Source of the DNA: Gnetum montanum
Lineage: Eukaryota > Plantae > Gnetophyta
DNA length: 64,000 bases
Direction of reading: 5' to 3'
Assembly (NCBI GenBank): GCA_015680685.1
Contig: MNCI01000811.1
Coordinates: 36,060-100,059, forward strand
In this document: positions 6,921 to 64,000 of the stretch, one piece after another
Position numbering within the stretch: position 1 is the first letter of the stretch
Layout: each line of letters starts with the position of its first letter
Made by a program: the position numbers and the translations under genes
The notes under the pieces: generated by a model
Told to the model about the DNA's origin: nothing
Databases searched by the model: none
What the model saw: only the letters and a program-made list of their open reading frames with translations

Positions 6921-7544
6921 TTTCCATATAACCACATACTTCAATGCCACCTCTACTAATGGTCAAGCCTGTTCTATTCTTCATATCTTTCCTCTCAATC
7001 TTATTCATGGGAAAGATACTAGTCTAATATGATAGATTATGAAGATTTCTTTTCTAATTTTTGTTTTACAATGTTCTTTTAATTTTTATTTTTTTTTGAA
7101 TTTTCTTTTGTTATGAATATGCTTCTTTTTATTTGTGTTATTTTATGTTTTCAATCCTATGTTTTTGTTAATAAATTTTCTCTTTTTGTACAGAAGACCA
7201 ACTTTGCTATTTGGCTTATGTTCTATGCTATGAAGATGATTGGGTAAGTAGTTGTGTAATGAAATGAGATCATGTCATTCAACCATCTAGTTTATATGAA
7301 TAAGAGATCTTTGTCATGAAAGTAACATGATTCTTCACATCTCAAAACTAAAATTAACTCATGATCATTATGCCTTGAGAAAAGTAAAAAGGACAAAGTG
7401 GGAATGAAAAATGAGGTGATATTAAGAAGTCTTGCTAATTCTTTACACTTTCTATATGGATCTTATTACTGCATGTATTTATGTTATTAGTAATGTTTTA
7501 ATTTTGATGGAATCATGTTCTTGAATAAGTGTTTCCTTATCATG

Positions 7545-7910
7545 TTCTTAGAAAGACATGTTACCCATGCTTGAACATAATCCTATGGTAAGGAAAGCAT
7601 AGTTGCTAATTAATTAATCCATAAAAAAAGGATTATTCTTGGGGTATCACTAGAAAACATGTTACCCATGCTTGAAGGTAATCCTTTGGTAAATGACACA
7701 TAATTACTAATTGATTAATTCATAAAAATAGCATGATTTATGAGGCACCAATAGAAAGACATGTTATTTATGTCTAAGAATGAGTTACGTTTAGGAATCT
7801 CAAAGGTCTTTTAGACTAGTCTCATCATGTGACTATAAAGACATATTATCCATCTCTGAAGATACACCTCTAATGAGGATTAGCATTAGCTATGAAGCTA
7901 AAAAGACATG
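7545..7910 (+). repeat. Spaced ~30-bp repeat (gaaagacatgttacccatgcctgaaggta) in Athila 3' non-coding region, 5 units
   Basis: Units at ~7551, 7653, 7754, 7837 and 7901. A homologous array lies at 18959-19235. Confidence 0.75.
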
Positions 7911-10400: not shown

Positions 10401-12000
10401 AACTAAAACTTGAAGAAGGATTATCAATGTAACATCTATTAATATAAACATCCAAAGGGTTTTTGCCCTATCATATCACACCTACAAGAGTCTAGGAATT
10501 ATGATTTGAAACCAAAGTTCATAGAAAATTAAATACCTAGGAGATTATCTTATCTACAAAGTAATTCTAGATAGTTCTACAACCAAAAGTACTCTCCAAG
10601 TGGGACTTAACCTCAATATTACTATCAACAACAATGGAAAAACCCATAGTCATGGGAGATGCCATCACTAAACTAGCAAGACATTTATTGTCAACTAAAC
10701 CCTTATGGATGCTATGTTCAATAGTCTATTTCTCCTAATTGTTCTACTTCTTATGTGTCAACTTACTACTACTATTCTTTTAAATAGTGTGAACCTATAA
10801 CATGTCCTATGAAATCACCATCCTATGCTTTTCATCATCTATCATATCCTTAATATTCTCATACTCTTTAACATGCATCACCATCAACAATGCAAGAAGA
10901 ATTGGAATCACAACCTGAACAACAGAATGTCACTTGTACTATCAACATAAAAGTGAATGATAATATTAGTAGCTCTAATTGTAATCCTTGAATATATTAT
11001 TTCTTTAAGATGGTTCCCACACATGTGAATAAAATACTAGACCTACTAGTTCATCAAAACCAACACAAGGCCAATATAGTGCAACTTCCTTCCTTATAAA
11101 AATTATGCCTCCTAATCCTACACAAAAGCCAAAAACCATCAACACTTCAAAACAAAACATAAAAAATAAACATGACATTAGGAAGAGACAAAAGATTCCA
11201 TACATTACTTATAATTATAAAGGATGCAGTTGTGGGCTAAAAATTTAAATTGTATAAATAATCCCTATACTAGCCTATAACAAACTTGAAAAATAAGTGT
11301 GTATGTATGTCTACATAATAGCTACTAAACCAAAAGAAATCTAGTGGCTAGAAAATAAAAGTACCAAATCATCCAAAAGATGCATGAAAACATCCAACCT
11401 ACTTATTAGCTCTTGTCCTAAGAAAATAAATCAAATAGAGAATTTTAAAAAGAACATCCTACACCCTAACTATACACTATAAGAAACTATGGAACCAGGA
11501 GACCCAAGAACAAAAACATAAAATTAAAAAGAAAACATATTTGAATCCTCTAAAAAAAATACCATCTATTCTAATTGAATATATGTCTCCAAATAATCAA
11601 AAAATTATTATCATCAATGTTAAATGGACTAATAAAAGAAAATAGAAATCACTAAAAATGATAAATGGATAACTTATGATATACAAACAAGAAAATATGT
11701 GGTTGATTTTTTGAATGCTTTTCTATGAGTTTAATCATGGGAAAGATGCCCCATTTTAAATAAATAACTAATACGTGCATTCTTACTTCTTTTTTTTACA
11801 ATTTTTTATCATTTTTCTATTTCTTACATGTTCATATTTCTTTAGAAATTTCCAATACTTAATATGTTTTCTATTTCCTATTATTTTTTATTTCTTTATA
11901 ATTTTCTATTTTCTTGAGTTATTTACTTTATGTTTTTGTTAATAATGTTGTTAGCCATGATGTAGATATCAACACCGTATGTTAGGTTTTTATTCTATGT

Positions 12001-12523
12001 TGTAACATCCCTAATCCCAAACGGTGCTACAACATAATGAAGATGGTGCCTCTTTATAACAAGTGTTATTGTTATCGTAACAAAAATAAAAAGGATGTGC
12101 GATAATTGAGACTCAAAAGGATGCACTATAATAATGGACATGTCTCTTGAGGTAACCTTTAGGGGTTTGACCTAAGGCATATGTACCTTGGCTTAGAGGT
12201 TGTGCTAGCATGGAGTGGTAGAGCCAGTAAAAGGTGAGTCACAGAAGCCAGGTGAAGTAGGATAGGAAGTTGATTGACCATTCCTTTTAGTTAGTAATAG
12301 GCCTACCTATGGTGGCAGTGTTGGATTTCCTCTAAGGGATAGATGCCAAGGGAAGAAAACTACAACTAAAACTCTAAAAGCATGATCTAGATACTCTATT
12401 TCATATCAATAAAGCATTCTTTACTTTTTCCTTTTGCATTTTTCCTATTATTTCCTTTATGCATACTTTCTAAGATAACATATATTTGACATTTTCCATG
12501 ACATCCGAGAATAGGATGTCACA
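12001..12523 (+). repeat. 5' LTR of CCR4-element copy 1
   Basis: Direct repeat of 18111-18633 (9 mismatches in the first 60 bp by eye). Terminal inverted repeat tgtaacatcc/ggatgtcaca. aataaa at ~12409. Confidence 0.93.
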
Positions 12524-12525
12524 AT

Positions 12526-12537
12526 TGGTATCAGATC
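12526..12537 (+). promoter_or_regulatory. PBS complementary to tRNA-iMet
   Basis: tggtatcagatc, 2 nt after the LTR end (canonical TGGTATCAGAGC). Confidence 0.9.
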
Positions 12538-13218
12538 AAACCATGACCTAAGGACCATTCAGAACCATGGGCTAACTACAACGTAAACCTAATGATAAGC
12601 CATTAAGCCACAACATAGGGAAAGTCATTGATCATCATTGGATGTATCATATGTCTAAGCTATAAGCTAAAATATACCTTTTCATTGATTTTATGAAAAA
12701 TGGATTAGACATCTATAAAAGACATATATGCCACCAACCAACAAAATTCTTTCATGGATATCGTTGATTGATGAAAATCTGATTGCGCTTCATCAAGATT
12801 CATTAATTACAAGAGATGTTGGTAAGGCATGGATACACTAGTCTAGGTAACTCTTATCCATCTAAATACTATAAATATTAATTGATTAAGATCATTATTA
12901 AGTATTTCCCAAAAAGTTAGTAACCATGATCTAAATTGATCTTGTTTTGTTGAAAGTTCTTAACCCTTGTAACTTAGCATTATTCACCATACCAAGACCT
13001 AGGTATTGATAAGAAAAAGAAGTTAACACATTCATAAGATTTTCTAATCTCCATAGCGAAACCAATAATTGGTAAATGATGTTGTTATAATCTTCTCCTT
13101 AATACCTCATTAGGGTATAACCCTAATATGAAAAGGTATAATTATCATAGTTGTTAAATTATAAGGTATAAATTATAATCAATTCCAAGTAATCTAGAAG
13201 ATCTCAAGTTATCCATAT

Positions 13219-13986
13219 TTATGGGACGCGATATCGCATGGGCCGTGATATCGCGTACGTGATATCACGGTCCACTGCAAAATCTAAGAATAAGAGGCAA
13301 CTCTCCCTTGTTTCTAAGTTTAGGCCTAAACCATAGCGAAACTTTGGCACTTTTACCTCTCCAGAGATAGAATAATTTCCATGTGCCTACAGTAGGAGGT
13401 CCAAAGTGAAAGGATCTTTATTTGAGCAAATATTGTACCTGAAGACAAGTTTGTGTACGGAAATAAAGACGAACTTCCTGGATAAACCTTGCAGTACATG
13501 GAATAGGCTAAATAGGATTTTAATTATTGTTATTTATTAGTTATCATTTAAATGCTTTATTAGTTAATTAAATCTCTCTCAACCCTTCTCCCATAGTTAA
13601 GTGCATTCAGTACAAACGCTTTGAACACGTGCGTTATGCTTGGTGATCCTAGTAACGAATAAGGTTTGGTAACCAAGGTTGCATTGGTTTAGGGTGTGAA
13701 TGTCAAGTGGGAATGGATGCTGATGCTAGGTTAATTAAGGCTTAGTTAGTTAGTTAAAGCTAGTTAATTAGTCTCTTCACCCTTCACCTCATTAGCATAG
13801 GAGATAAAACATAAAAGACATAAAAATCACATACCTTAGACTTACTTAGCCATACAACCATGACCAATGATTAACCTTAAGTGTTCCATAAGGTGTGTAG
13901 GCACTTAGTTTGTGGAGTTCAACCATATCGCGCATGTAACGCTCATATTCGTATGGTTGAGTGTAGGGGTACCTCGCCACTCATCA
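13219..13986 (+). mobile_element. Younger CpG-rich solo LTR (Athila-related) nested in CCR4-element copy 1
   Basis: Flanked by TSD catat (13214-13218 and 13987-13991). Termini ttatggg...ccactcatca. Absent from copy 2 at ~59840. Shares cttggt.atcctagta and the 3' end with the A1/A2 LTRs. Confidence 0.8.
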
Positions 13987-14689
13987 CATATCTTAGACTA
14001 GTAATGTCAGTTCAACAAAAAAGGCTATTTTGATCCTCTTAATTTCTAAAATTCCAACTTCCTTTTTTAATAATAATACTATGTGCAATGCATAGTACTT
14101 GTCAAGATGATTCCAACAATACAAATTTCATCTTGATTGGACTTATGGTTTAAGGAATATCAATGTTTTGAATTTCTTATTATGCATGCATTAAAATAAT
14201 ATTAATTTATTATTATAATTATTAAAAAAATAAAAGAGCGAGAGTTCATGGATTCAAACCTAGGCCCTCCCTCTTAATTAAAAATTTTTTCATTTAATTT
14301 TAAAAAAATATTTTTTTGGGTTGAATCCCCAACCCCAGGGGGGAGTAAAGTCTGCGGTCGGCACACACTACCTATGTTAGGGTAACAAATCCTAGTCACG
14401 TAATGTCATAGTTAGTCCAACAGTTACAGAAGTAGGGGAAAGACCTCTTGCACTAACAACTAGAGTAGCCATGTGCCTATTGCTCACTTGCACTTGCCAC
14501 TCCACCTTTATTGACTTCATTCCATTACCACATCCCCCTTCCCACATTGATGTTGCATTATTTCCTAATGCCTATGTTGTTTTCCACCACCAGTCACCAT
14601 CATACATCACAGTGTTGACATTTTCCATTATGCATGCCACTCACCGCTTGCCATTGTCCACCTACATCATGCTATGCCCTTGCCTACCT

Positions 14690-14965
14690 TCTGCACCATC
14701 ATTGTTCCTAGCATCAGAAATCACTACCTCTTCTATTACTCCACAAACACTGCTAGCCCTGGGAATCATGGCCCCTTCTAGTGCATTTCATACATCACTG
14801 ATGTTGGGAATTACTATGCCTTCCAATGCACCATGAATAATGTTAATGCTAGGAATCATTTCCCCTTCCAACACACCATGGACACTACAGGTGTTGGGAA
14901 TCATTGCCCCTTCTGGTACACTATCAATGCCACCGATGCTTGAAATCGTTGCCCCATCTGGCATT
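14690..14965. repeat. Degenerate ~45-bp tandem repeat (gggaatcattgccccttc core), ~6 units
   Basis: Core recurs at ~14716, 14761, 14806, 14851, 14896 and 14941. Confidence 0.65.
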
Positions 14966-16446
14966 ATTATAGAAAACCCTTGCATTGCATGTACATCATG
15001 AAAAACTCACTTCTAGAGACTGATTCCATGTTGAGGAAATTGCATAGCATCACCTCTAGTAGCTTGCGTAGCATCACCTAGGGTCATGCAAGCTTGCCCT
15101 AGGCTACATAGGTCTTGGTGGGGGTTGTGCAAGCCATTGTGTTGGTTGCATAGGCCCTTGCATGGGCTATGCAAGCCTTAAGGGTGATGCAAGATTGACT
15201 GAGTTACACTAGCCTTGGTAAGGGTTTCCCAGGCCTACTTGGATTTTTCTAACTAAAAAAAAAATGCCACTGCCCATTGCACCACTACCCATCATCATCG
15301 TGCTTTCCCAATGCACCACCACCACTACGCTTTCCTAGTGCACCAATTCTGCCCATTGTTGCTGCACTTCTTAGCATGCCCTATCCACCACTGCACTCTT
15401 CTAGTGTACCCTACTCATTGCTCGAATGCCCTATAGCCACTATGGTTGTCCTTACCCCAACAACTATGCCTACCCCCAATGACTTAAAAATTTTTCTATC
15501 CAGTAATGGAAAATTTCAATTGTCAACTGATGGGAAATTCCAATTTTTTTGTCAACCAATGGAGAATTTAAAAATTTTATTCATTATAATTTTGTTTGAA
15601 ATTAGAAATGTAGGAAAAGTTTCAAGAAAAGGAAAATTAGCACACTGGTAGGGAATGGGATAAAAATTTTAAAATTAAGCATGCTTGTCCTGGAACAGTA
15701 TTGGGATGGGCAACATCTTGAGAAGTCTCATTTTTTGTGCCAAGGGTTCTAGATTTTAGAAGCCATAACTTTTGATTTCAAAAGAATTTTTTAGAAAATG
15801 AAAAGTCATTTCTTATAGGTTTTAACCTTTTGGAAACAATGATCAAGTCAAATCCATCCCATGAAACCCTAAAAATTAGTTTTCATCCCTTGTTCAATAT
15901 AGTACCTTAAGACCCTCAAAAGCTTAATTTAGCATAAATTGAGCATATGATGTCCTTTCTCAACATATGAATGGTCATTTCCAACATTTTTCACCATTCT
16001 GAACTCAATGGTGAGAATGGATTTATCATATGGGTATCTAATAATTTAGTAACACCTTAAATCATGTCTTAAGAGGCCATAACATAGACTAGTTAGTCAT
16101 ACCTACCAATTTAATTGTTAAGACTTAATGTAACCTCTTAAAAATTAAGATTAAGGGTGTAGTCTATGTAGATAAGTAATCTTAGTTTCCTAAAACTCTA
16201 GTTTCTCATTAGTACACTACTAAAGTTAGTGTTCTTAAGAGGGGTATAATGGATGTTAATAATTAGATAATGTAGTAAATTAGTTAATCAGTTGATGTAT
16301 CAGTTGATGAATAAAAATGGTTAAGAAGACATATATTAGTTCATTTTGCAATCAAACCATATGGTAGAACAATAGAGAGTCATGATCTTATTTCAATAAG
16401 ATGTAAGATATCCATAAAGAGTAATGGTCTAGCAAAGAATCCAAGA

Positions 16447-17339
16447 ATGAGAATGAAATTTACAACATATAACATGCTTGCAAGATCCCTAGCATATGAG
16501 AAACAACATCCACTATGTCTACCATGGGCCTTGTATTGGCATGAGTATCGATACCCATACATCTTAGTAGAGTTACAAGATTTAGATGTTGATGTCTTGT
16601 ACCTACAAGAAGTATTTTCATGGGAATTTCTATATGAATTCCTACCAAACTTGGAAAATATGGGATACATAGGTATTTATAAGCAAAAAGATTCTTGGGA
16701 AAGTTCTTCTTTAGAGCCATACAGATTAGCCTATTGTAGAAATCACATGGATGGTTGCACTATCTTTTATAAAGAAGTCAAGTTTGAATTAGTACAAAGA
16801 TTTGAATGGAGTTTAGAAAGTATGATTTTTGAAATTCTAGAACCTCAAATGATTAAAAAAAGAACAATTAAGATTTTAGAAAGGTTGCATAGCTTTGGCA
16901 TTGATATTAAAAATCCATCTATCAGGAAGATGTGTATGTAGTGAACATACATTTAATTGCCAAATCAACATGTTTAGATGTTAGACTATGTCTAGGAGCA
17001 TACTTAATTAAGTAAATAGAAGAAAGTTTGAAGAATACTTTATTCCTACACTATATTGATCCAATGCCAATTATGCTTTGTAGAGAATTCAATGCAAAAT
17101 TTGGAAGTAGTGTTTATCAATTCTTAAAATATGAATGTGTAAAAGAATCCTTGGAAGATGAGCCTAATTTGAAGAAGAGGTTTCCATCAATTCAACATGA
17201 AATTCCATTACCTAGTGCATATTCTTCTTACTTTGAATATTTAATAGATAAATTAGATCCTAGAATTTAGGAAAAGATGATGTTGATGGATAGTACTCAT
17301 CAAGAATCATAGTTTACCAATTATTCTACTATGATTAAT
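16447..17339 (+). pseudogene. CCR4: CCR4/nocturnin-family EEP deadenylase domain, intronless, frameshifted; runs into assembly gap
   Basis: FTTYNMLA..YE..HP.C.PWAL.W.EYR...L..LDVDVLYLQEV; GYIGIYKQK; DGCTIFYK..KFELV; then across frameshifts IALALIL....GRCVC, VNIHL......DVRLC, PIMLC(G/R)EFNA..GSSVYQFL, SAYSSY and FTNY. These are the ordered CCR4-type EEP motifs. Confidence 0.88.
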
Positions 17340-18110
17340 NNNNNNNNNNNNNNNNNNNNNNNNNNNNNNNNNNNNNNNNNNNNNNNNNNNNNNNNNNNNN
17401 NNNNNNNNNNNNNNNNNNNNNNNNNNNNNNNNNNNNNNNNNNNNNNNNNNNNNNNNNNNNNNNNNNNNNNNNNNNNNNNNNNNNNNNNNNNNNNNNNNNN
17501 NNNNNNNNNNNNNNNNNNNNNNNNNNNNNNNNNNNNNNNNNNNNNNNNNNNNNNNNNNNNNNNNNNNNNNNNNNNNNNNNNNNNNNNNNNNNNNNNNNNN
17601 NNNNNNNNNNNNNNNNNNNNNNNNNNNNNNNNNNNNNNNNNNNNNNNNNNNNNNNNNNNNNNNNNNNNNNNNNNNNNNNNNNNNNNNNNNNNNNNNNNNN
17701 NNNNNNNNNNNNNNNNNNNNNNNNNNNNNNNNNNNNNNNNNNNNNNNNNNNNNNNNNNNNNNNNNNNNNNNNNNNNNNNNNNNNNNNNNNNNNNNNNNNN
17801 NNNNNNNNNNNNNNNNNNNNNNNNNNNNNNNNNNNNNNNNNNNNNNNNNNNNNNNNNNNNNNNNNNNNNNNNNNNNNNNNNNNNNNNNNNNNNNNNNNNN
17901 AAAATGAGGTAAGTATTACTAAAATGATATTTAAATTCTCATATATTTATCTCACATATATTTTATTTGCAGAATAAGTAACAAACAACTTCAAGTCTAA
18001 AGGAGAAATCAAATTATTAGAGCATAGGATCATAACAAAAGTACTGGAGTTGGATAAAGATAGTGAACATAGACTTGTTTAATGAATAATGAAACCTAAG
18101 GGATGTAGAT

Positions 18111-18633
18111 TGTAACATCCCTATTTCAAAATGGTGCTATTGTATAATGAAGATGGTGCCTCTTCATAACAAGTTTTATCATTATCGTAACAAAACCCAA
18201 AAGGACGTGTTGTAATTGAGACTTGAACAAATACATTGTAATAACAAACATGTCTTTTGAGGTAACCTTTGAGGGCTTGACCTAAGGCATATATACTTGG
18301 GCTTAGAGATCATGCTGGCATGGATTGGTGGAGCTAGTAAAAGGTGATTCAATGGAGCCAAATGAAGTGGAATAGAAAGTAGACTAGCCATCCCTTCTGG
18401 CCAATAATAGGCCTAACCATGGTGGTAGTGATGGATTTCCTCTAAGGGATAGATGTAGAAGGAAGAAAACCACAAGAAACACTCTCATAGAATGATCTAG
18501 ATACTCTATTCCATATGAATAAATCATTCTTTACTCATTCCTTTTGCATTTTTCTTATTATTTCCTTTGTGCATAATGTCTAATATAATGTATATTTGAC
18601 ATTTTCCATGACATTTGGGAATAGTATGTCACA
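18111..18633 (+). repeat. 3' LTR of CCR4-element copy 1
   Basis: Same length (523 bp) and termini as 12001-12523. Preceded by the PPT and followed by the TSD. Confidence 0.93.
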
Positions 18634-19912
18634 TATGCTATCAAGATATTGGGGGAATAATTTTGTAGAGTAGAAAGACCACATCATTCATTTATTCAAT
18701 TTCTATAAATAAGAGGTCCTTATCAGGAAAGAAATATGGTTCCTCTTACATGAATCTAAAATTAACTCATGATCATTATTCCTTAAAGAAAATGGGAAGG
18801 ACCAATGGGGAATGGAAAATGGAGTGGCATTAAGAGGGCTTGATAATTCTTTATACTTCTTCTATGGATCTTAGTAGTTCATATGTTTATTTTATTACTT
18901 ATGTTTTAATTTTTATGAAATCATGTTCTCAAATAAGTATTACCTTACCATGTCACTAGAAATACATGTTACCCATGCCTGAAGGTAGTCCTCTAGTAAT
19001 GAAAATATAATTGACCAATTAATTAATTTACAAATGAATATGATTCCTAGGGTACCATTAGAAAGACATATTACCCTTTCCTAAAGCTAGGCTACTTCTA
19101 AGAATCCCAAAGATTTCTTGGACTACTTTCATTATATGGTTTGAAAAACATGCTACCCATGCCTCAAGGTACTTCTCTAATGGGATTAGCATTGGCTATG
19201 AAGAGAGAAAGACATGTTACCCATGCCTGAAGGTACCCCTCTAACAAACAGCCAAGTTTCTTCAAAAATTTAATGTTTAAGTAATTAATTAATCAAAACC
19301 ACTTTCTATTTTTCTTTTTAGAGTAGTGATGTTTTCATTTGGTTTTAGTGGTCTTATGCTTATATGTTCAGGATGATACAATGCAATGTTACTAGTAAAG
19401 GTATGGGCTTGGTTTTAAATTATAGATGATGCCTAAATCAATACCTAAGATTGAATGTCTTTCATAATGCAAGGAAATGAGGTGAAGAAGAGGATACAAA
19501 AGAGCATACCTATGGACATATAGCAAATAAAATAAGTAAGACTCAAATATCATATGTTCACTACCCATAAATTGATGGGTTAATAAGGAGAAATTTTAGT
19601 CTATCCTTCAAAAGGTTTGCATATAAGAGAAGCACCAAGATAACAACTAAGGTTGGAAGAATTGCCACCACTAAAAACAACATGAAGACTCATAATTAGT
19701 AGATTTTTTAGGACTTTTCTAATTTTTTAAAGTTAATATCTATTTATTATTTTTTTATTTTTGTAATACATCTACTTGAATAAAATTTTATAATGTGATC
19801 TCAAGTTTTTTAATATTAATTAATCTAGTCTTGGTCATTATACAATTTTTGTAATGGAACATCATCCATTTTATACAACTTAAGGATGAGTTCTTAGTGA
19901 GGCATGCAAGTA

Positions 19913-30034: not shown

Positions 30035-30854
30035 AGTAGATCTTTAATTCATATCTTATGATTATCTTAGGAAATGAGGTAAGTATTAAGAAAGTAATGT
30101 TTAATTTTCCATATAATTCTTCTCATGTATATTTTATTTGCAAAATAAGCAAGAGATGACTTCAAGCCTAGAGGAGAAATCAAATTATTAGAGCATAAGA
30201 TCATAAAAGGAGAATTTGAGTTAGAAAGAGATAGTGTACATAAACCCATTCGAGGATTAATGAAACCTAAGAAGGGTAGACTATAATGTCCCTATTACCA
30301 AATGGTTCCACAGCATATTGAAGATGGTGTCTCTTCATAACTAATCTTGAGATTAGTGTAACAAGACTCAAAAGAGAAGTTGTAATTGAGACTAGAAAGA
30401 ATGTGTTATAATAACAAACATGTCTCTTGAGATGACCTCCAAGGGTTTGACCTAAAATATTTATACCTAGGCATTAGAGGTCATATCGGCATGGAGTTGT
30501 GGAGTCGTTAAAGGTGAGTAATGGGTTTTAGGTGAAGTAGGATAGGAAGAGGATAGGCCATACCTTTTGATTGTTTATAGGCCTAACCATGGTGGCAATG
30601 TTGGATTGCCTTTAAGGGATAGATGCCAAAGAATGAAAACCCCAAGGAACACTTAAAGCATGATCTAGATATATTATTTTGCATTAATAAAGCATCATTT
30701 TCCTCTTTTCTTCTACATTTTCCATGTTATTGTCTTTACGCTTAATGTTGAATGTTACTTATATTTGATGTTTGTTATGTTATCTTCTTACACCTAATGT
30801 CTAATATAACATGTATTTGACATTTTCTAGGACATCAAGTAGTGGAATGTCACA
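30035..30854 (+). mobile_element. 3' end (3' UTR, PPT, 573-bp LTR 30282-30854) of a third CCR4-element family copy; 5' part lost at an N junction
   Basis: 30035-30281 matches 63661-63905 and 17901-18110. The LTR ends ggaatgtcaca and matches 12001-12523 plus a 50-bp tandem duplication. Confidence 0.85.
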
Positions 30855-34448: not shown

Positions 34449-35503
34449 TGAAACACCATAAAATTTTATATGTTATAGCCAATTTTCATCATGTAGCTTT
34501 CACCCCATGAAACTTGAGGTAAAACTTCATTGTAAATGTGAAGATTGTAATCCATGAGGGGAAATCTCACATATTCCATACTTTTAGGGCTAAAAATGCC
34601 TCATAAGTGGTCAAAGCTTCATCCCTAAGTAGAAAAAGTCATGTACTATCCATATTTGGGCTAGGGGGATCAAAAATGCCTTTGGGATGTCATAAATGGA
34701 AATTTGATGGGTTTTATGGGGGTTATACAATTTTCTATGCTAGAAACACTTGAAGGGAGGTAGATCTTACCTACCCCTAGCATGGAGGAGTAAGGGNTCC
34801 CTAGTGTGGAAATTGCATGCCCTCAATGTGGAAGCTACAAAAGCTAGATTTCAACACTCCATGGACTCCAACATTGACCAGCCACCTCATCAAGGATGGC
34901 AAAAGGCTCAATGTGAAAGATCCATCTCTAGCATGGAAGGTGTGCCTCCCTAACTATTTATAGTAAATGGAATGGCCATGGGGATAAGGCACTTACTATA
35001 TATTGTAAACCCCTAAATTTGGGCACCTGTCTTACTTGTATGAAGTAGAAATTTGCAGCCAAATTACAACCAATTTGCAACCATTGTACAGCCAAATTGT
35101 AGCCAAATCATAGTTAATTTTCAGCCCCATTCATAGCCTAAAACCTATAAAAACTAGCCTCAAGCACCATTTATGAGTTCTACAAGTTTTCAATGTTTAG
35201 AAATTTTTTGAAGGTTCCACTCTTTTGGCACTTAAATACATTTAGCATACATACATTTTTCCAAGAAATAATTCCACACTTGGGCATTTTCAAGCACTCA
35301 AGATCTTTTGCAATCTCCCATGTTTGCATTCTCTTGAACCCTAGTGTGGAAGCATTATAGCCTTAAGACTTGTGAAATTTTGGTGTCAATGTTGCATTTC
35401 TAGGACTTTCAAGCCCCAAAGTGGAGGCCCTAGGGATTTGAGGTTGAGGTTGATACGCTAGATTTATCAATTTTTCCAGTGATTGATTTTTCTTATTGCA
35501 ATA
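34449..35503 (+). repeat. 5' LTR of Tat element (~400-bp shorter than 3' LTR)
   Basis: Colinear with 54621-55604 and ~56000-56064. TATA cctataaaa at ~35144. Confidence 0.88.
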
Positions 35504-54620: not shown

Positions 54621-56064
54621 TAAAAAACCACAAAATATTATATGTTATAGTTGATTTTCATCATGTAGCTTGCACCCAATGAAACCTAAGGAAAAACTTC
54701 ATTGTAAATGTAAATATTGTAATCCATGAGGAACAATCTCACATACTCCATACTTTTGGAATTGAAAAATTCCTCATAAGTAGTCAAACCTCATTCCCCT
54801 AGTACAAAAATTCACCTAGTATTTATACTTAGGATTAGAAGGGTTAAAATTACATTTTGAAATGCTAAAAATAATAATTTGATGGGTTATAGGAGGTATA
54901 CATTTTTCTACACTAGAAATACTTGTAGGGGGTTAAATCTTACCTATCCACAGTGTGGAGGAGTGGGGGATTTTTTCTTAGCTAGGAAAATTTTTCCCCC
55001 CAAGTGAAAAATGCATTCCCCCAACATGGAAGGCACAAAAGCTAGATTTCAACACTCCATGCACTCTAATGTTGACTAGCCACTTTAGCAAGGATGGAAA
55101 AAGGCATAGTGTGAAAGATTCATCTCCAGCATAGAAGGTGTATCCTTGTTACTATTTATAGTAAATGAAATGACGATGGAGGGAAGGCACTTACTGTGTA
55201 TAGTAACCACCCAAATTTGGGCATGCATCTTACCTATATGAGGTAGAAATTTGTAGCTAATTTACAGCCATTGTGCAGCCAAATTAGAGCCATTTTGCAG
55301 CACCATGCATGGCACAAAACCTATAAAAAGAAGCCTTAAACACCATTTATAGGTTTAACACTTTTGGGATAATTTGATACTATTAGCATTAGTTCCAATT
55401 TTTTGGCACTTGAATACATTGAACATACATACATTTTTCCAAAAAATAATTTCACACTTGGGCATTTTCAAGTACTCAAGAGCTCTTGCAATCTCCCATT
55501 TTTGCATTATCTTAACCCCATTGTGGAAGCATTATAGCCTTGGAACTTGTGAACTTTTAGTGTAAACATTGCATTTTTGGGACTCCCAATCCCCCAGTGT
55601 GGAGAAATCCAATACCCAAAATTTTCACTTTCCTCATCCCCTAGTAGTAACCCAAATTGTAGATCTATAGTTTGTAGTAGAGGAGATTCGAATGCACTAG
55701 GAGTGGCTTGGTATTTAAATCATGGAGCAAATCACATTGGATTCAACAAGCCTTGAACTCTTGCCTCAGCAAACCCTCCTTTGCTCTCTCATGGGCATTT
55801 CTTGTACACATTTTTGAAACTTTCCTTTATTATTTTAATAAATTTTTTAAATTTTCATTTTTTGTGTGCACTCTACATTTGTTTTCTATTTACAAATCTG
55901 TAATTTTTTAATTATTATTTGAATCATTTGTTTTGCACTCCCCAAAGTGCCTGGTTGATTTTCCAGATAGGCTAGTGCATCCTGAATTCCATTTCTTTCA
56001 AAGGCCTTTGGAATTTGAGCTTGAGACTATTGCACTAGATATATTGATTTTTCCTATTACAACA
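54621..56064 (+). repeat. 3' LTR of Tat element
   Basis: Direct repeat of 34449-35503. Ends ttacaaca, followed by TSD atgta. Confidence 0.88.
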
Positions 56065-57800: not shown

Positions 57801-60800
57801 AGTGTTTGTTTAGGATAGGTTATACTTGTACAAGCTCTATCTTCGATAGTTCCAAACATTTTTAATTATAATTTGAAATCCTAGCTCTTTAAATTGATTT
57901 AAACTTAAAGAGCTTGCATGATCAATGGAATAAAACCTTTTAGATTGATTATTTAGATTTAAAAACTTCCATTTTTAAAAGGAAAATGTGATCAAAATTA
58001 ATTTAATCTTCTTAGCATTTTCATATAATTTTTTATCCAAAAATTTACTTCCAATTAGAGCTTGTTTTTCATACATAAATACAATGTGATAAATCTTAGC
58101 TTAATCATATCATGTGTGTACATCAATCTTTAATTTGAAAGCTATGGGATATCACACAAGGACATAAGCCCAATAATTCAAGTTCTTTATTATTCCATGA
58201 AAATGGCTATTACTACAACAACAATATTTTTAAAGAGAAACATAATCTTCTTTTTGTAACATGTACATACATAAGATAAATTGAGAAAAATATTAAATAT
58301 TTTTTGGGAAGAAAACCCTTGTAGATTAAGGTTAAATAGTGATTAAAATACTTAAGTGCTAAAATGGTTCAAATAGATTAACTAAAGCAAAGATGATAGG
58401 ATTAGGTGACATTGTATAGTGATTATGAGTTTCCTCTAAAATTTTCATTCTAGAGCTTCATCATATCCATGTTTGGTTGGTACTTTAGCAGGTACAATGA
58501 TTTTCACTTCATTACTTTGATCCAGCATTTTATTAGGATCCTTCAAACTTTCATCTTCCTTCAGTGCTTCTTCATCTTCATGATTTTTTTTAATTTTTGA
58601 GCCTTCTTTCTATGTTGTTTTTGAGCTAATTATCTATAACATCCTCATAAGTAAAATTCTGAATTAGACATCTCTTGTTAAAGTTTTCTTTTAGTGAGAG
58701 ATTTGAGCACTCTAGTATCTCAACCTATCCTCAAACATGGATTGATTTACCATTTGTAAGCATGGAAAACTCATTGGAATGCTAGGTCATATATTGATAG
58801 TTATAGGATGCTCCATAAGTGATATTCCTATTGTCATGTCCCCATTCACAATTGATGTTGCTACATAACAAAGATGGCATCTCTTCATAACAAGTGTTAT
58901 TGTTATCATAACAAGACCTGAAAGGGTAGTTGTAATTGAGACTTGAAAGGGGATGTTGTAATAATAAACATGTATTTTAAGGTAACCTTTGGGGATTACC
59001 CTAAGGCATTTATACCTAGGCTTAGATGTCATGTTGGCATGGAGTTGCAAAGCTAGTACAAGCAAGTCATAGGAGCTAGGTGAAGTGGGATAGGAAGTGG
59101 ACTGGCCATCCCTTATGACCAAGTTATAGGCCTAACTGTGGTGTCAGTGTTGGATTTCCTCTAAGGGATAGATGCCAAAGGAAGAATACTTGAAGGAACA
59201 CACTTAGAACATGATTCAGATACACTATTTCATATCAATAAAGTATTATTTTTTTCTCTTTCTACATTTTTCCTATTATTTCATTTATACATAATGTTGA
59301 ATATCACATATATTTTGCATTTGGTATATTTTCTTTGTATGCATAATTTCTAGTATATTATATATTTGATGCTTGGTATCAGAAGAAACCATGACCCAAG
59401 GATCATTCAGAATCATGGGTCGGCTACAACATGAACCTAATGACGAACCTTGAAGCCACAACATAGGGAAAGTCATTAACCATCATCAAATGCACCATAT
59501 GTTTGAGATGATTAATGAAATCTAGAAGATACCATTCCATTGATTTCTTGAATAATGGATTAGGCATTTACAAAAAGACATAGATCCCACCAACAAAATT
59601 CTTTCATGGATATCATTAACCAACGAAGATATCACACCTCATCAAGATTCATTAATCACAAGAGATGTTTGTGAGACAATGATACACTAATCCATGTAAC
59701 TCTTTCCCATATTAATACTATAATTATTAATTACTTATAGTCATTGTAAATTTCTTTCAATAAATTTAGTAACAATGACCTAAATTGATCTTGTTTTATT
59801 GAAATTCACTATCCAAGTAATCTAGAATATTTTAAGTTACCCTATGGTAGCCTAGAAATATCAATTCAAAAAAATATGCTACTTTTTTCTTCTTAATTCC
59901 TAAAATCTCACCTTCATTTTTGAACCTAAGACTATGTCAAATGCATAGTACTTATCAAGACGATTCCAATGGTACAAATTTCATCTTAATAGGACTTATG
60001 GTTTGGAAGATATTGATGTTTAAAGTTTCTCATTTTGTATACATTTAAATAATATTAAATTATTATTTTAATAAAAAATTAACAAAAGATCATGGGTTCA
60101 AACCTAGGCCCCCTCCCTCCTTAGTTTTATAAAATATATACNNNNNNNNNNNNNNNNNNNNNNNNNNNNNNNNNNNNNNNNNNNNNNNNNNNNNNNNNNN
60201 NNNNNNNNNNNNNNNNNNNNNNNNNNNNNNNNNNNNNNNNNNNNNNNNNNNNNNNNNNNNNNNNNNNNNNNNNNNNNNNNNNNNNNNNNNNNNNNNNNNN
60301 NNNNNNNNNNNNNNNNNNNNNNNNNNNNNNNNNNNNNNNNNNTCGTTTATCCATACTGAACCTCTAGCTTGTCATCGACTTAACTACCACGTTAACCACT
60401 GAGGCAAAGATAATAAAATAATAAAAAAAGGCTCAAAAAATTCTCTAAAATACTTATCAAGCAAGAGGTCATGGGTTCAACCTTGTGCCCCAAAATGTTT
60501 TTAATTAAATAAGAATAAGAATAATAAAATTAATAATAATATAAATAAAGAATATATTTTTATTTATTTTAAAAAATAAAAATAAAAAATTAAACTAATA
60601 ATTAAATTTAAAAAAATTTGGGTAGGCCATGACTAGCCTTAATACTAGTCACGACAAGGCTTGCAAGGTCGACTAGTAGCTGATAGTACTTGGACCTACT
60701 TCGCAAATGCCATGGCCAGCCCCAAAAGTGGGTTGGAAAGGAAGTTAGCTCACCTCCTGCTCTTGTGCATCCTCCTATGCCATTTCCAAACCCCCCACCC

Positions 60801-62357
60801 CTATATCCTTCCATGCACATGCCTATTCACATTTTTCTTTTATAGCCCTTCACGTGCCACGGCTACTATGTTCCATCATTACCCTGCATGCCACGATGCT
60901 TTGCCCCACTGCCTTCTCTGTAGCATGCACTACCACTTTCATACATGCTCACAATATTTTCTTGCTTGCTACCTACTATTTTTGCTATAGAAATCCTTAT
61001 TGTGTATTTCATAGCTATTTTTGACTATGTCACTATTGCTTGATGATGCTGTGGATCATGGCCTCCCATGCCATCAATCATCACCTCCCATGTTGCAAAT
61101 CATCACCTCCTGTGCCGCTGATCATTACCTCCCATATTGTCGATCATTACCTCTTGTATCACCGATCATCACCTCCCTCCTTTGGCATTGAAAAAAACCC
61201 TAATGCAACACGTGCTAGAAAAAAAATAAATAAAAATACTTGTACAAGGCTTGTGTGCTAATAGAGGTTGCATAGCCTTGCAGAGGACCACATGGGCCCT
61301 ATATCAGGCCACATGAGCCCAGTAATGGGCTACGTGGGCCCTAAATTGGGCTATGTAAGCCTAGGGATAGACTATGGAGGTCCTAGTGAGGGCTATGCAA
61401 GCCTTGAAAAGGGGCTACATAGGCCTAGTCTAGACCACCTAGTGTAGCGCCTTTTTCACCAACTTCACTATCATCATCATTGATGAGCATCTCTACCTAC
61501 CATGTTACTTTCCTTGTCCATGTTCCTTGCCCTGTTGTCATCTACTGCTTAGCAATTTTGATGGAAAATTCAAATTTCTTGTTGACAAGCTATTAGTTAA
61601 ATTAAAAACATGTAAAAAAATTTTCAAAATGGAATTTGGTGCATTGGTAGCAACTTAGATAGAAAATTTGTAATTAAGCACGCTTATCTTAGAGTAGAAC
61701 TAGGATGGATGACATCTTGGGAAGTCTTGTTTTTTGTGCCAAAGGTCCTCGATCTCAAAAGCCATAATTTTTTATTCTAAAAGGCTTTTTTGATGAATGA
61801 AGTCATTTTATATAGATTTCAAACTTCTAGACCCAATGGTGAAGTTAGATCCATCCTGAGAAATCCCAAAAATTAGTTTTATCCCTTGTCCAACATAGTG
61901 ACTTAAGACTCTTAAAAACTTAAATTTAGCATAATTCGAGCATATGATGTCCTTTGTCAGCATATGAATAGTCATTTCCAACATTTGCACCCTTCTAAAA
62001 TCAATGGTGAGGTTAGATTTATCATCCAGATAGCCTTAAGATCCCTATGGCATGCCATTAGTTACATTGCTAAAGTTAGTATTCTTAAGGGATGTAAAAA
62101 GGCCATTAAGATTTAGATAATGTTTACAAGACTTAGATAATATTCTACAGAAATTGTTTGAAGAATGTCTCAGTATTAGTTGATTATCAGTTGGATAATT
62201 AGTTGATGAAATAGAATGGTCTTTAATAATCAAGTAGATGTATATCAATTTATCTTACAACCAACTCATACAGCAGAACAACATGAAGATTCAAAATATC
62301 ATTTCAACAAGGTGTATGATATTGGTAAAGAGAAATGATTCAAAGGAAAATCTAAGA

Positions 62358-63470
62358 ATGAGAATGAAAATTGCAACATACAACATGCTTGTGAGATCCC
62401 TAGTAAGTGAGAAATAATATCCATTCTATCCATCATGGACCTTGGATTGGCACGAATACTGATATCCATGCATCTTAGAAAAGTTAGAAGATTTGGATGC
62501 TAATGTCTTGTGCTTACAAGTCTTGCCATGGGAGTTTCTATACCAATTGCAACTAGATTTGGAGAATATGGGACATAAAGATATTTACAAGAAAAAAGGT
62601 TCTTATGGAAGTTCTTCTTTTGAGCTATATAGATTAGCATATTGCTGAAATTACAACATGGATGGTTGCATGATCTTTTATATGAAGCCAAGCTTGAATT
62701 GATACAAAGATTCAAATGGAGTTTAGAAATATGATTTTCATAATTCCAAATTTTCAAACCATGGAAAGGAAAGAATAGTCAAGATTTTGGGAAAATCACA
62801 TAGCCTTGGCATTGATTTTAAAAATTTAGTTATTAGGAAGATGTGTATGTGTGTTCAACACAGATTTAATTGCCAAATCAACATGTTCAAATGTTATACT
62901 ATGTTAAGGAGCATATTTGAATAAGAAATAGAACAAAGTTTGAAGAATAAGTTATTCCTAGGTTATACCGATCCAATTCCATTTCTTATTTATGGAGACT
63001 TCAATGCAAAAGTTGGAAGTAGTGTTTATCAATTCTTAAAATATGGATCTGTAAAGGAACCTTTGGAAGATGAACTTGATTTGAAAAAGACATTTTCATC
63101 AATTCAACATACAATTTCATTAGCTACTACATATTTTTCTTACTTTGAATCTTCAATAAATAAATCAAATTCTAGAATTCAAGAATAGATGATGTTGATG
63201 GATAATACTCATCAAGAACCACAGTCTAACAATTACTCTATAATGATTAATGAGGATGGATCAACAAAATTCTTCATTGAGACCCTAGATTATATTTGGT
63301 ACAATGTCCAATTCCTCAAAGTTATCAAGTTACTAGATTTAATTTCTAAAGAAGAAGTTGACAAGAGTCAAGATCAAGCCTTGCCATCTTGAGCAAGACC
63401 ATTTGATCACATATCACTTATGGTAGAATTACAATTACTCCCATCAATTCATAACATTGATCAAGATTAG
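62358..63470 (+). pseudogene. CCR4: CCR4/nocturnin-family EEP deadenylase domain, full length, intronless, with stops and frameshifts
   Basis: MRMKIATYNML..YPFYPSWTLDW..DANVLCLQ; MDGCMIF; NHIALALIL..GRCVCVFNT.L; PFLIYGDFNAKVGSSVYQFL; EPQSNNY..F.ETLDYIWY..LKVIKLLDL; ALPS*ARPFDHISLMVEL; stop at 63468-63470. Confidence 0.9.
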
Positions 63471-63905
63471 GAAGTATCTTACCCTTAGTTTTATTGATGA
63501 TATTTTTATTTTATTTATTATTTAATTGATATTTTAATTAGATAAGTAAAATATCTATGGTAATGAAAGTTCAAAATAAAGAATTTTCCCTACCTTCACT
63601 TGGATAACTAGATTTGAGTTACACCTTATCTGACCTTGGTTAGACTGGTGATTGGTGGTTGGTAGATCTTTAATTGATCTCTTATGATTATCTTAGAAAA
63701 TAAGGTAAATAATAATAAATTAATATTTAATTTTTTTATATTTTTCTCACATATATTTTATTTGTAGAATAAGTAAGAAACAACTTCAAGTTCAAAGGAG
63801 AAATTAAATTATTATAGCATGGAAGCATAATATAAGTATTTGAGCTAGAAAAAGATAGTGAACGTGGACTCATTCAAGGATGAATGAAACCTAAGTGGGG
63901 TAGAT

Positions 63906-64000
63906 TGTCATATTCCCATTACCAAATAATGTTGTTACATAACAAAGATAATGTCTCTTCATAACAACTGTTATTATTATCGTAACAAGACCCAAAAGGG
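63906..64000 (+). repeat. Start of 3' LTR of CCR4-element copy 2
   Basis: tgtcatattcccatt...aagataatgtctcttcataac matches 58832-58925. Confidence 0.88.

Follow-up and report, generated by a model that had tools for sequence, protein, structure and literature searches.

Two decayed copies of an abundant pol-less LTR retrotransposon family in Gnetum montanum carry a predicted CCR4/CNOT6L-type nuclease reading frame that was open in their common ancestor

We analyzed a 64,000-nucleotide stretch of Gnetum montanum DNA (hereafter the window; contig MNCI01000811.1 of GenBank assembly GCA_015680685.1, positions 36,060 to 100,059 of the forward strand) and found that positions 58832-64000 are the second member (copy 2) of a family of long terminal repeat (LTR) retrotransposons without pol, the first member (copy 1) lying further upstream in the window. 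The sole recognizable open reading frame (ORF) of the family is, judging from homology, an intronless nuclease domain of the CCR4/CNOT6L type in sense orientation. Both copies are now pseudogenes with different lesions. We favor, with a probability of roughly 60%, the reading that this ORF is a passenger that was still whole because the spread of the family soon followed its capture, and that was not demonstrably kept by selection.

Self-comparison of the window by blastn aligned 58831-64000 with 12000-18204 in several collinear blocks of 75-81% identity, which cover the LTR, the leader, the ORF, and the 3' end. The starts of the blocks recur ~5-6 kb downstream (12000-12533 with 18110-18643, and 58830-58926 with 63904-64000). 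The second full copy announced by the sequence-only reading is thus real, but "full" was generous, as its 3' LTR is cut after 95 bp, ~1 kb is absent, and an assembly gap interrupts it. The parts of the two copies are as follows.

Copy 1:
12001-18633, forward strand: complete element, with LTR pair, primer site, and target-site duplication
12001-12523 and 18111-18633, forward strand: LTRs of 523 bp with TG..CA ends, 82% identical
12526-12535, forward strand: primer-binding site TGGTATCAGA, 2 nt past the 5' LTR
16447-17339, forward strand: CCR4-type pseudogene, its C-terminal quarter lost in the gap at 17340-17900

Copy 2:
58832-59371, forward strand: 5' LTR, beginning TGTCATG, by direct reading
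59374-59385, forward strand: primer-binding site TGGTATCAGAAG of the initiator-Met tRNA type, by direct reading
59386-62357, forward strand: non-coding leader containing the assembly gap 60142-60342, its ORFs without a Pfam domain
62358-63470, forward strand: CCR4/CNOT6L-type nuclease-domain pseudogene
63890-63905, forward strand: purine-rich tract resembling a polypurine tract, directly before the 3' LTR, by direct reading
63906-64000, forward strand: 3' LTR, first 95 bp only, cut by the window end

The purine-rich tract of copy 1 ends at 18110, abutting the 3' LTR, and the element is bracketed by a 5-bp target-site duplication (TATGT at 11996-12000, TATGC at 18634-18638). Compared with copy 1, the 5' LTR of copy 2 has lost its terminal ~33 bp, including the canonical CA end, and contains a 25-bp tandem duplication at 58914-58962. 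The 95 bp of its 3' LTR are 83% identical to the start of its 5' LTR (Kimura two-parameter distance, K2P, 0.20). We take the primer sites of both copies to match the 3' end of tRNA-iMet, as in plant LTR elements generally. No gag or pol domain (protease, reverse transcriptase, RNase H, or integrase) was detected by Pfam in the upstream ORFs or in a stop-poor frame of the 5' leader, and pol would not fit into the assembly gaps, estimated at 201 and 561 bp. The lack of gag-pol in the family implies mobilization in trans by an autonomous element.

That copy 1 arrived by transposition is confirmed by a paralogous empty site elsewhere in the window, where the paralogue of its target sequence runs uninterrupted over ~7062-7910:

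7220-7240, forward strand: paralogous empty site for copy 1, with a single TATGC (7224-7228), collinear with both flanks of copy 1

The flanks of copy 1 and copy 2 are unrelated, and the two are therefore independent insertions and not the products of a segmental duplication.

In a structural database, the intact 164-aa frame of copy 1 (16447-16938) matched the nuclease domain of human CNOT6L best (E = 5e-15), followed by CNOT6, yeast Ccr4, Angel2, Nocturnin, and PDE12; neither an apurinic (AP) endonuclease nor a LINE protein was among the matches of this frame. The C-terminal pieces of copy 2 matched the GDFN block (Angel2, Ccr4, and PDE12) and the DYIWY block (Nocturnin). Translated comparison with CCR4 proteins was collinear through both copies, covering the motifs YN(M)L, LQEV, DGC, NIALxxxL, NTH, GDFN, SAY, EPxFTNY, LDYI, and DH, and Pfam gave a weak Exo_endo_phos match only (E = 0.088). 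Among 1.84 billion representative proteins there were 452 matches, the best at only 41-45% identity (E = 2e-13); by name, the top 150 of the 452 were CCR4-NOT subunit 6 or poly(A)-specific ribonucleases. The best named matches were generic eukaryotic CCR4s of protists and animals, and a canonical plant CCR4 (Dovyalis) ranked ~146th at 33-36% identity. The ESM Atlas returned generic EEP clusters only. Nothing was found by a homologous-protein search with the 164-aa and 82-aa pieces, whose length limits would miss an intact ~370-aa protein, nor by a protein scan and a conserved 22-mer scan of metagenome contigs, nor with the same 22-mer on viral contigs.

The ORF resembles CCR4, CNOT6, and CNOT6L (PDB 3NGQ) in that its homology spans the entire EEP domain and its N, E, DGC, NTH, GDFN, DYI, and DH motifs are collinear with theirs, and differs from them in its identity of at most 45% to any known member, in having no leucine-rich repeat, and in that both copies are pseudogenes. 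Homology to CCR4 begins at the nuclease domain, a few codons past the ATG. No N-terminal partner-binding region (in fungi and animals the leucine-rich repeat, which links the enzyme to CAF1/NOT1) was found upstream, where at most ~40 codons are open and give no Pfam match. Every EEP motif is intact in at least one copy, and the complete catalytic set is present in neither. Copy 2 lacks the catalytic Glu and has substitutions in NTH and SDH; copy 1 has substitutions in NTH and GDFN and has lost the C-terminus.

The lesions of the two copies were compared in a MAFFT alignment in which column triplets were read from the shared ATG (16447 in copy 1, 62358 in copy 2). Wherever an indel has a length that is not a multiple of three, one of the copies changes frame, so both copies can be read in one common frame of ~372 codons. 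In this frame there are four stops in 296 codons of copy 1 and eight in 364 codons of copy 2, compared with 25-36 in the wrong frames, and the residual ORF signal is therefore far above chance. The lesions are listed below.

Copy 1, forward strand, ~16858 and ~16936: frameshifts by 2-bp deletions
Copy 1, forward strand, 16877, 17013, 17268, and 17310: in-frame stops
Copy 2, forward strand, 62681, 62729, and 62925: frameshifts by 1-bp deletions
Copy 2, forward strand, 62415, 62460, 62646, 62776, 62827, 62905, 63186, and 63390: in-frame stops
Copy 2, forward strand, 62517: in-frame 3-bp deletion that removes the catalytic Glu of LQEV

Copy 1 is open from the ATG at 16447, with its first 138 codons intact, an open frame to 164 aa, and 300 codons readable. 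The earlier description of this copy as open to ~16850 and then frameshifted twice was accurate. Copy 2 was said to be in frame over the same region; it does lack both frameshifts and reads NHIALALILKI..GRCVCVFNT there, but it carries stops at 62776, 62827, and 62905, and the stretch is out of register with its N- and C-terminal parts owing to the deletions at 62681, 62729, and 62925. The proposal that several stops arose by single transitions holds at 62415 and 62460, where copy 1 has the sense codon, and 63390 falls in the copy 1 gap. The merged frame of ~370 aa with catalytic motifs was recovered as ~372 codons by alignment columns. The gap at 17340-17900 removes the copy 1 ORF past codon 300, and because of it only copy 2 supplies DYI, DH, and the final quarter of the merged frame; the estimated size of this gap (561) is compatible with the 445 bp present in copy 2 at that place.

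The two copies have no lesion in common. Their breaks coincide in place only at codon 192, with a stop in copy 1 and a 1-bp deletion in copy 2; this was considered as a shared ancestral lesion and rejected, as other family contigs carry a full sense codon there. Because no lesion is shared, the alignment shows that the common ancestor of copies 1 and 2 carried a predicted ORF of ~372 codons, open and with the EEP catalytic motifs. A stop or frameshift shared by all copies at one site had been named as what would speak against an intact ancestor, and between the two copies none was found. It is supported that most decay came after insertion. Two copies cannot date a private lesion as before or after insertion, nor can they show that the immediate master of each was intact. 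There are 6-12 disabling lesions per ~0.1 substitutions per site, and at this load about 1-2% divergence would suffice to destroy the frame in a master evolving neutrally.

Other members of the family were sampled from Logan contigs of two DNA runs (organisms A and E) aligned to 62200-63520 at ≥80% likeness. There were 13,713 contig pieces on the ORF region from organism A and 21,550 from organism E. Distinct contigs tiled the region ~thousand-fold, and the family is therefore very abundant in at least two differently labelled organisms. Family letters were compared position by position for 40 of the 219 rows. At the 62646 stop of copy 2, 99% of the family contig depth carries another letter, and the undeleted form at 62517, 62681, and 62925 is present in at least 50-90 contigs per run. 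Among the 40 rows, four of the 12 copy 2 lesions and the codon-192 stop of copy 1 are absent from many members, in agreement with the earlier proposal that decay followed insertion from an intact ancestor. The majority family letter differs between organisms A and E at 62353, 62418, 63086, 63367, 63410, and 63480. These positions look like subfamily markers, implying separate amplification or a different subfamily make-up; with two synonymous and three non-synonymous changes, they are too few for a test.

We read the history of the two copies as follows. Both are old insertions, made independently by one family of non-autonomous LTR retrotransposons, which is copied in trans by way of its LTR ends, initiator-Met-type primer site, and polypurine tract. 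The ORF was most likely picked up as a processed RNA by template switching during reverse transcription. With ~372 codons of CCR4/CNOT6 type and all EEP motifs, it was open in the common ancestor. After insertion, each copy decayed neutrally by transition-biased substitutions in a strongly CpG-depleted genome, together with small deletions.

Whether selection kept the ORF open was addressed by comparing divergence in and around it. Within elements, K2P is 0.21 for the copy 1 LTR pair and 0.20 for the copy 2 pair (95 bp), which indicates that both insertions are old and of similar age. Between the copies, K2P is 0.31 for the LTRs, 0.25-0.27 for internal non-coding blocks, 0.20 for the 3' tail, and 0.216 for the ORF, and LTRs of family members differ by 0.31-0.35. 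About 0.2 of the between-copy divergence is post-insertion decay. The ORF has diverged as much as the LTRs within an element (p = 0.89) and to an extent indistinguishable from internal non-coding sequence (p = 0.17). ORF differences between the copies are spread 49/49/49 over the three codon positions. The true-frame dN/dS was 0.57 by NG86 (bootstrap 0.37-0.88) and 0.82 by maximum likelihood, and wrong-frame controls gave 0.46-0.57 and 0.80-0.83, respectively. The NG86 value of 0.57 was rejected as a selection signal, since wrong frames yield the same value; for the same reason, dN/dS below 1 is attributed to transition bias (transition/transversion ratio 2.2). CpG observed/expected is 0.05-0.28. 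The pair shows no coding signature, and the earlier proposals of a "probably selected" ORF and a "likely active enzyme" are not supported.

Purifying selection in the master lineage is nevertheless the alternative that survives best, and we regard it as unlikely, though a serious possibility. The CCR4-type nuclease would then be an accessory gene that helps the element. It might trim poly(A) and so steer element RNA from translation to packaging, or it might disturb host mRNA decay or silencing. The ORF has an ATG and a stop of its own, spans the catalytic domain in full, and keeps each motif somewhere in the pair, but its codon-position and dN/dS signal is no stronger than that of the wrong-frame controls. 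LTR divergence of 0.31-0.35 between members as against 0.21 within copy 1 suggests that masters evolved while the ancestral ORF stayed open, and the ORF is less diverged than the LTR between copies; set against this, the ORF has diverged as much as internal non-coding sequence, and the 3' non-coding tail is as conserved (K2P 0.20). The success of the family in at least two organisms and the lack of a cellular relative above 45% also speak for selection, but no intact copy was found among public proteins, and the RNA reads are few, in both orientations, and none from copy 2. Nuclease-type extra ORFs in LTR elements have a precedent in the DEDDy-exonuclease ORF3 of bdelloid rotifers (PMC5408684). 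Against selection stands the position of the ORF, which begins 3-4 kb past the 5' LTR behind a leader rich in start and stop codons. That a pol-less LTR lineage kept a CCR4-type deadenylase as its sole protein under selection, across at least a thousand copies and at least two plant species, is in our estimate likewise unlikely.

Several points weigh against the passenger reading. The ORF is less diverged than the LTR between the copies (18% vs 25% raw, p = 0.003), which would fit constraint in the master lineage and equally faster LTR evolution or recombination. Since nearly all divergence is post-insertion, this pair could hardly reveal selection among the masters, or its lack. Only two copies were compared directly, with the last quarter of the ORF represented in one of them. 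No donor gene or intact annotated relative above 45% identity was found among the 1.84 billion representative proteins; the missing donor is compatible with the ORF having resided in the element lineage for a long time, for which selection would be needed. The lack of a donor may reflect such a long residence, a divergent host paralogue absent from databases, or the ~10% decay per copy. Conversely, capture of a passenger shortly before a burst would predict an intact master just as well.

The RNA evidence is weak and at the level of the family only. No RNA record was among the public runs holding this stretch, and reading 2% of each of two RNA runs from organism A gave no read ≥99% like copy 2. 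One of these runs contained ~40 reads from other members, in both orientations, with letters following the family majority.

Two further explanations are very improbable. That a host region with a CCR4 pseudogene was duplicated, segmentally or in tandem, to give both copies accords with their common strand within 64 kb, but hardly with an LTR pair in each copy, a primer site and target duplication in copy 1, the paralogous empty site, unrelated flanks, thousands of related contigs in two organisms, and the lack of a shared lesion. The ORF is also most improbable as the apurinic-type endonuclease of a LINE-like element: such enzymes belong to the same EEP superfamily with a common N, E, D, H motif logic, and Pfam gave only the weak Exo_endo_phos match, but in the structural database CNOT6L and CNOT6 rank first, ahead of yeast Ccr4, Angel, Nocturnin, and PDE12, the top 150 of the 452 library matches bear deadenylase-type names as given above, there is no reverse transcriptase after the ORF, and LTRs are present in the element.

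Plant LTR retrotransposons are known to capture genes, usually as fragments at low copy number. New here is a whole mRNA-decay catalytic domain as the only ORF of a very abundant pol-less family, still open at the time of spread. The family is like Bs1 in being an LTR element with an intronless, sense-oriented cellular coding sequence inside, spread by retrotransposition. Bs1 carries, according to a review, segments from three genes and no full-length ORF among them, whereas one complete catalytic domain is present here, in a family of about a thousand or more copies for which no donor gene was found. LARD and TRIM elements also have LTRs, a primer site, and a polypurine tract without pol, are mobilized in trans, and can reach high copy number. 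To our knowledge, they carry no recognizable protein-coding gene; the present family differs from them by its full nuclease-domain ORF.

The nearest analogue is the DEDDy-exonuclease ORF3 of bdelloids. Like this family, the Juno and Vesta LTR elements encode a nuclease acting on RNA 3' ends in an additional ORF close to the 3' LTR, and its catalytic residues are kept; departures from neutrality were undetectable within a genome for that ORF (PMC5408684). Unlike this family, Juno and Vesta are autonomous (gag and pol) animal elements with a DEDD fold; here the element is pol-less, from a plant, and has the EEP fold of CCR4. We found no paper on CCR4 or another deadenylase as cargo of an LTR retrotransposon, and reviews of extra ORFs and of plant gene capture are silent on it. 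If selection kept the ORF open, a retroelement would here encode a deadenylase, which would be a new kind of accessory function among LTR elements. The family would then parasitize other retroelements and contribute an RNA-decay enzyme, either to its own replication or to a conflict with host silencing. Yeast Ty elements depend on mRNA-decay factors, and a selected deadenylase would tie in with this. If the ORF was a passenger, the family offers a clean and datable case of whole-gene retro-capture and methylation-driven decay.

The gap at 60142-60342 lies in the non-coding leader of copy 2, where it precedes the ORF by 2.0 kb and interrupts no reading frame. On its left side, collinearity with copy 1 extends as far as 14273; on its right side, blastn gave no alignment to copy 1 before 61599 (15599 in copy 1). 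Inspection by eye revealed a motif, tcatgggttcaa..cct..gcccc followed by an A/T-rich run and ctagtcacg, on both sides of the gap (60091-60141 and 60469-60500) and once in copy 1 (14246-14270). Either ~380 bp were duplicated locally, or the scaffold was joined imperfectly. Continuity across this gap is unverifiable and has no bearing on the ORF finding.

Immediately past the primer site (12536-12955 and 59386-59804), the leader is conserved between copies and contains the stop-poor frame, which in copy 2 has eight stops in 141 codons and no Pfam match. This frame could be the remnant of an older first ORF. Copy 1 then has ~1 kb (12956-13993) without a counterpart in copy 2, where 43 bp are found (59805-59847); either copy 1 received a nested insertion or copy 2 lost the segment by deletion. 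The mid-leader segments (14274-15598 and 60343-61598) are GC-richer and repeat-bearing and occupy the same position, yet do not align between copies, so that the segment is either fast-evolving or replaced. In copy 2, 22/44-bp tandem repeats occur at 61077-61177.

A transcript abundant in both RNA runs (at least 50 reads) contains a diverged family fragment corresponding to ~62926-63052, followed by unrelated sequence. Two blocks of 35-40 nt align at ≥80%, and the sequence between them is homologous but divergent, with the GDFN position unconserved. This fragment could be exonized or host-recruited.

A third, partial member of the family was also found in the window:

30036-30820, forward strand: last ~250 bp of the internal region plus LTR

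It contains no part of the ORF, and its LTR is more divergent (K2P 0.34). The window as a whole has 34% GC, a CpG observed/expected ratio of 0.15, and a longest ORF of at most 170 codons, and tRNA and Rfam scans of its 64 kb were empty. Copy 1 is nested in another dispersed repeat (11865-12000 plus 18634-19216), with its paralogue at 7062-7910. A pair of direct repeats at 34451-35426 and 54623-55604, in which no CCR4-like sequence was detected, are ~1 kb long, 76% identical, and bracket ~20 kb; they are presumably the LTRs of a large element.

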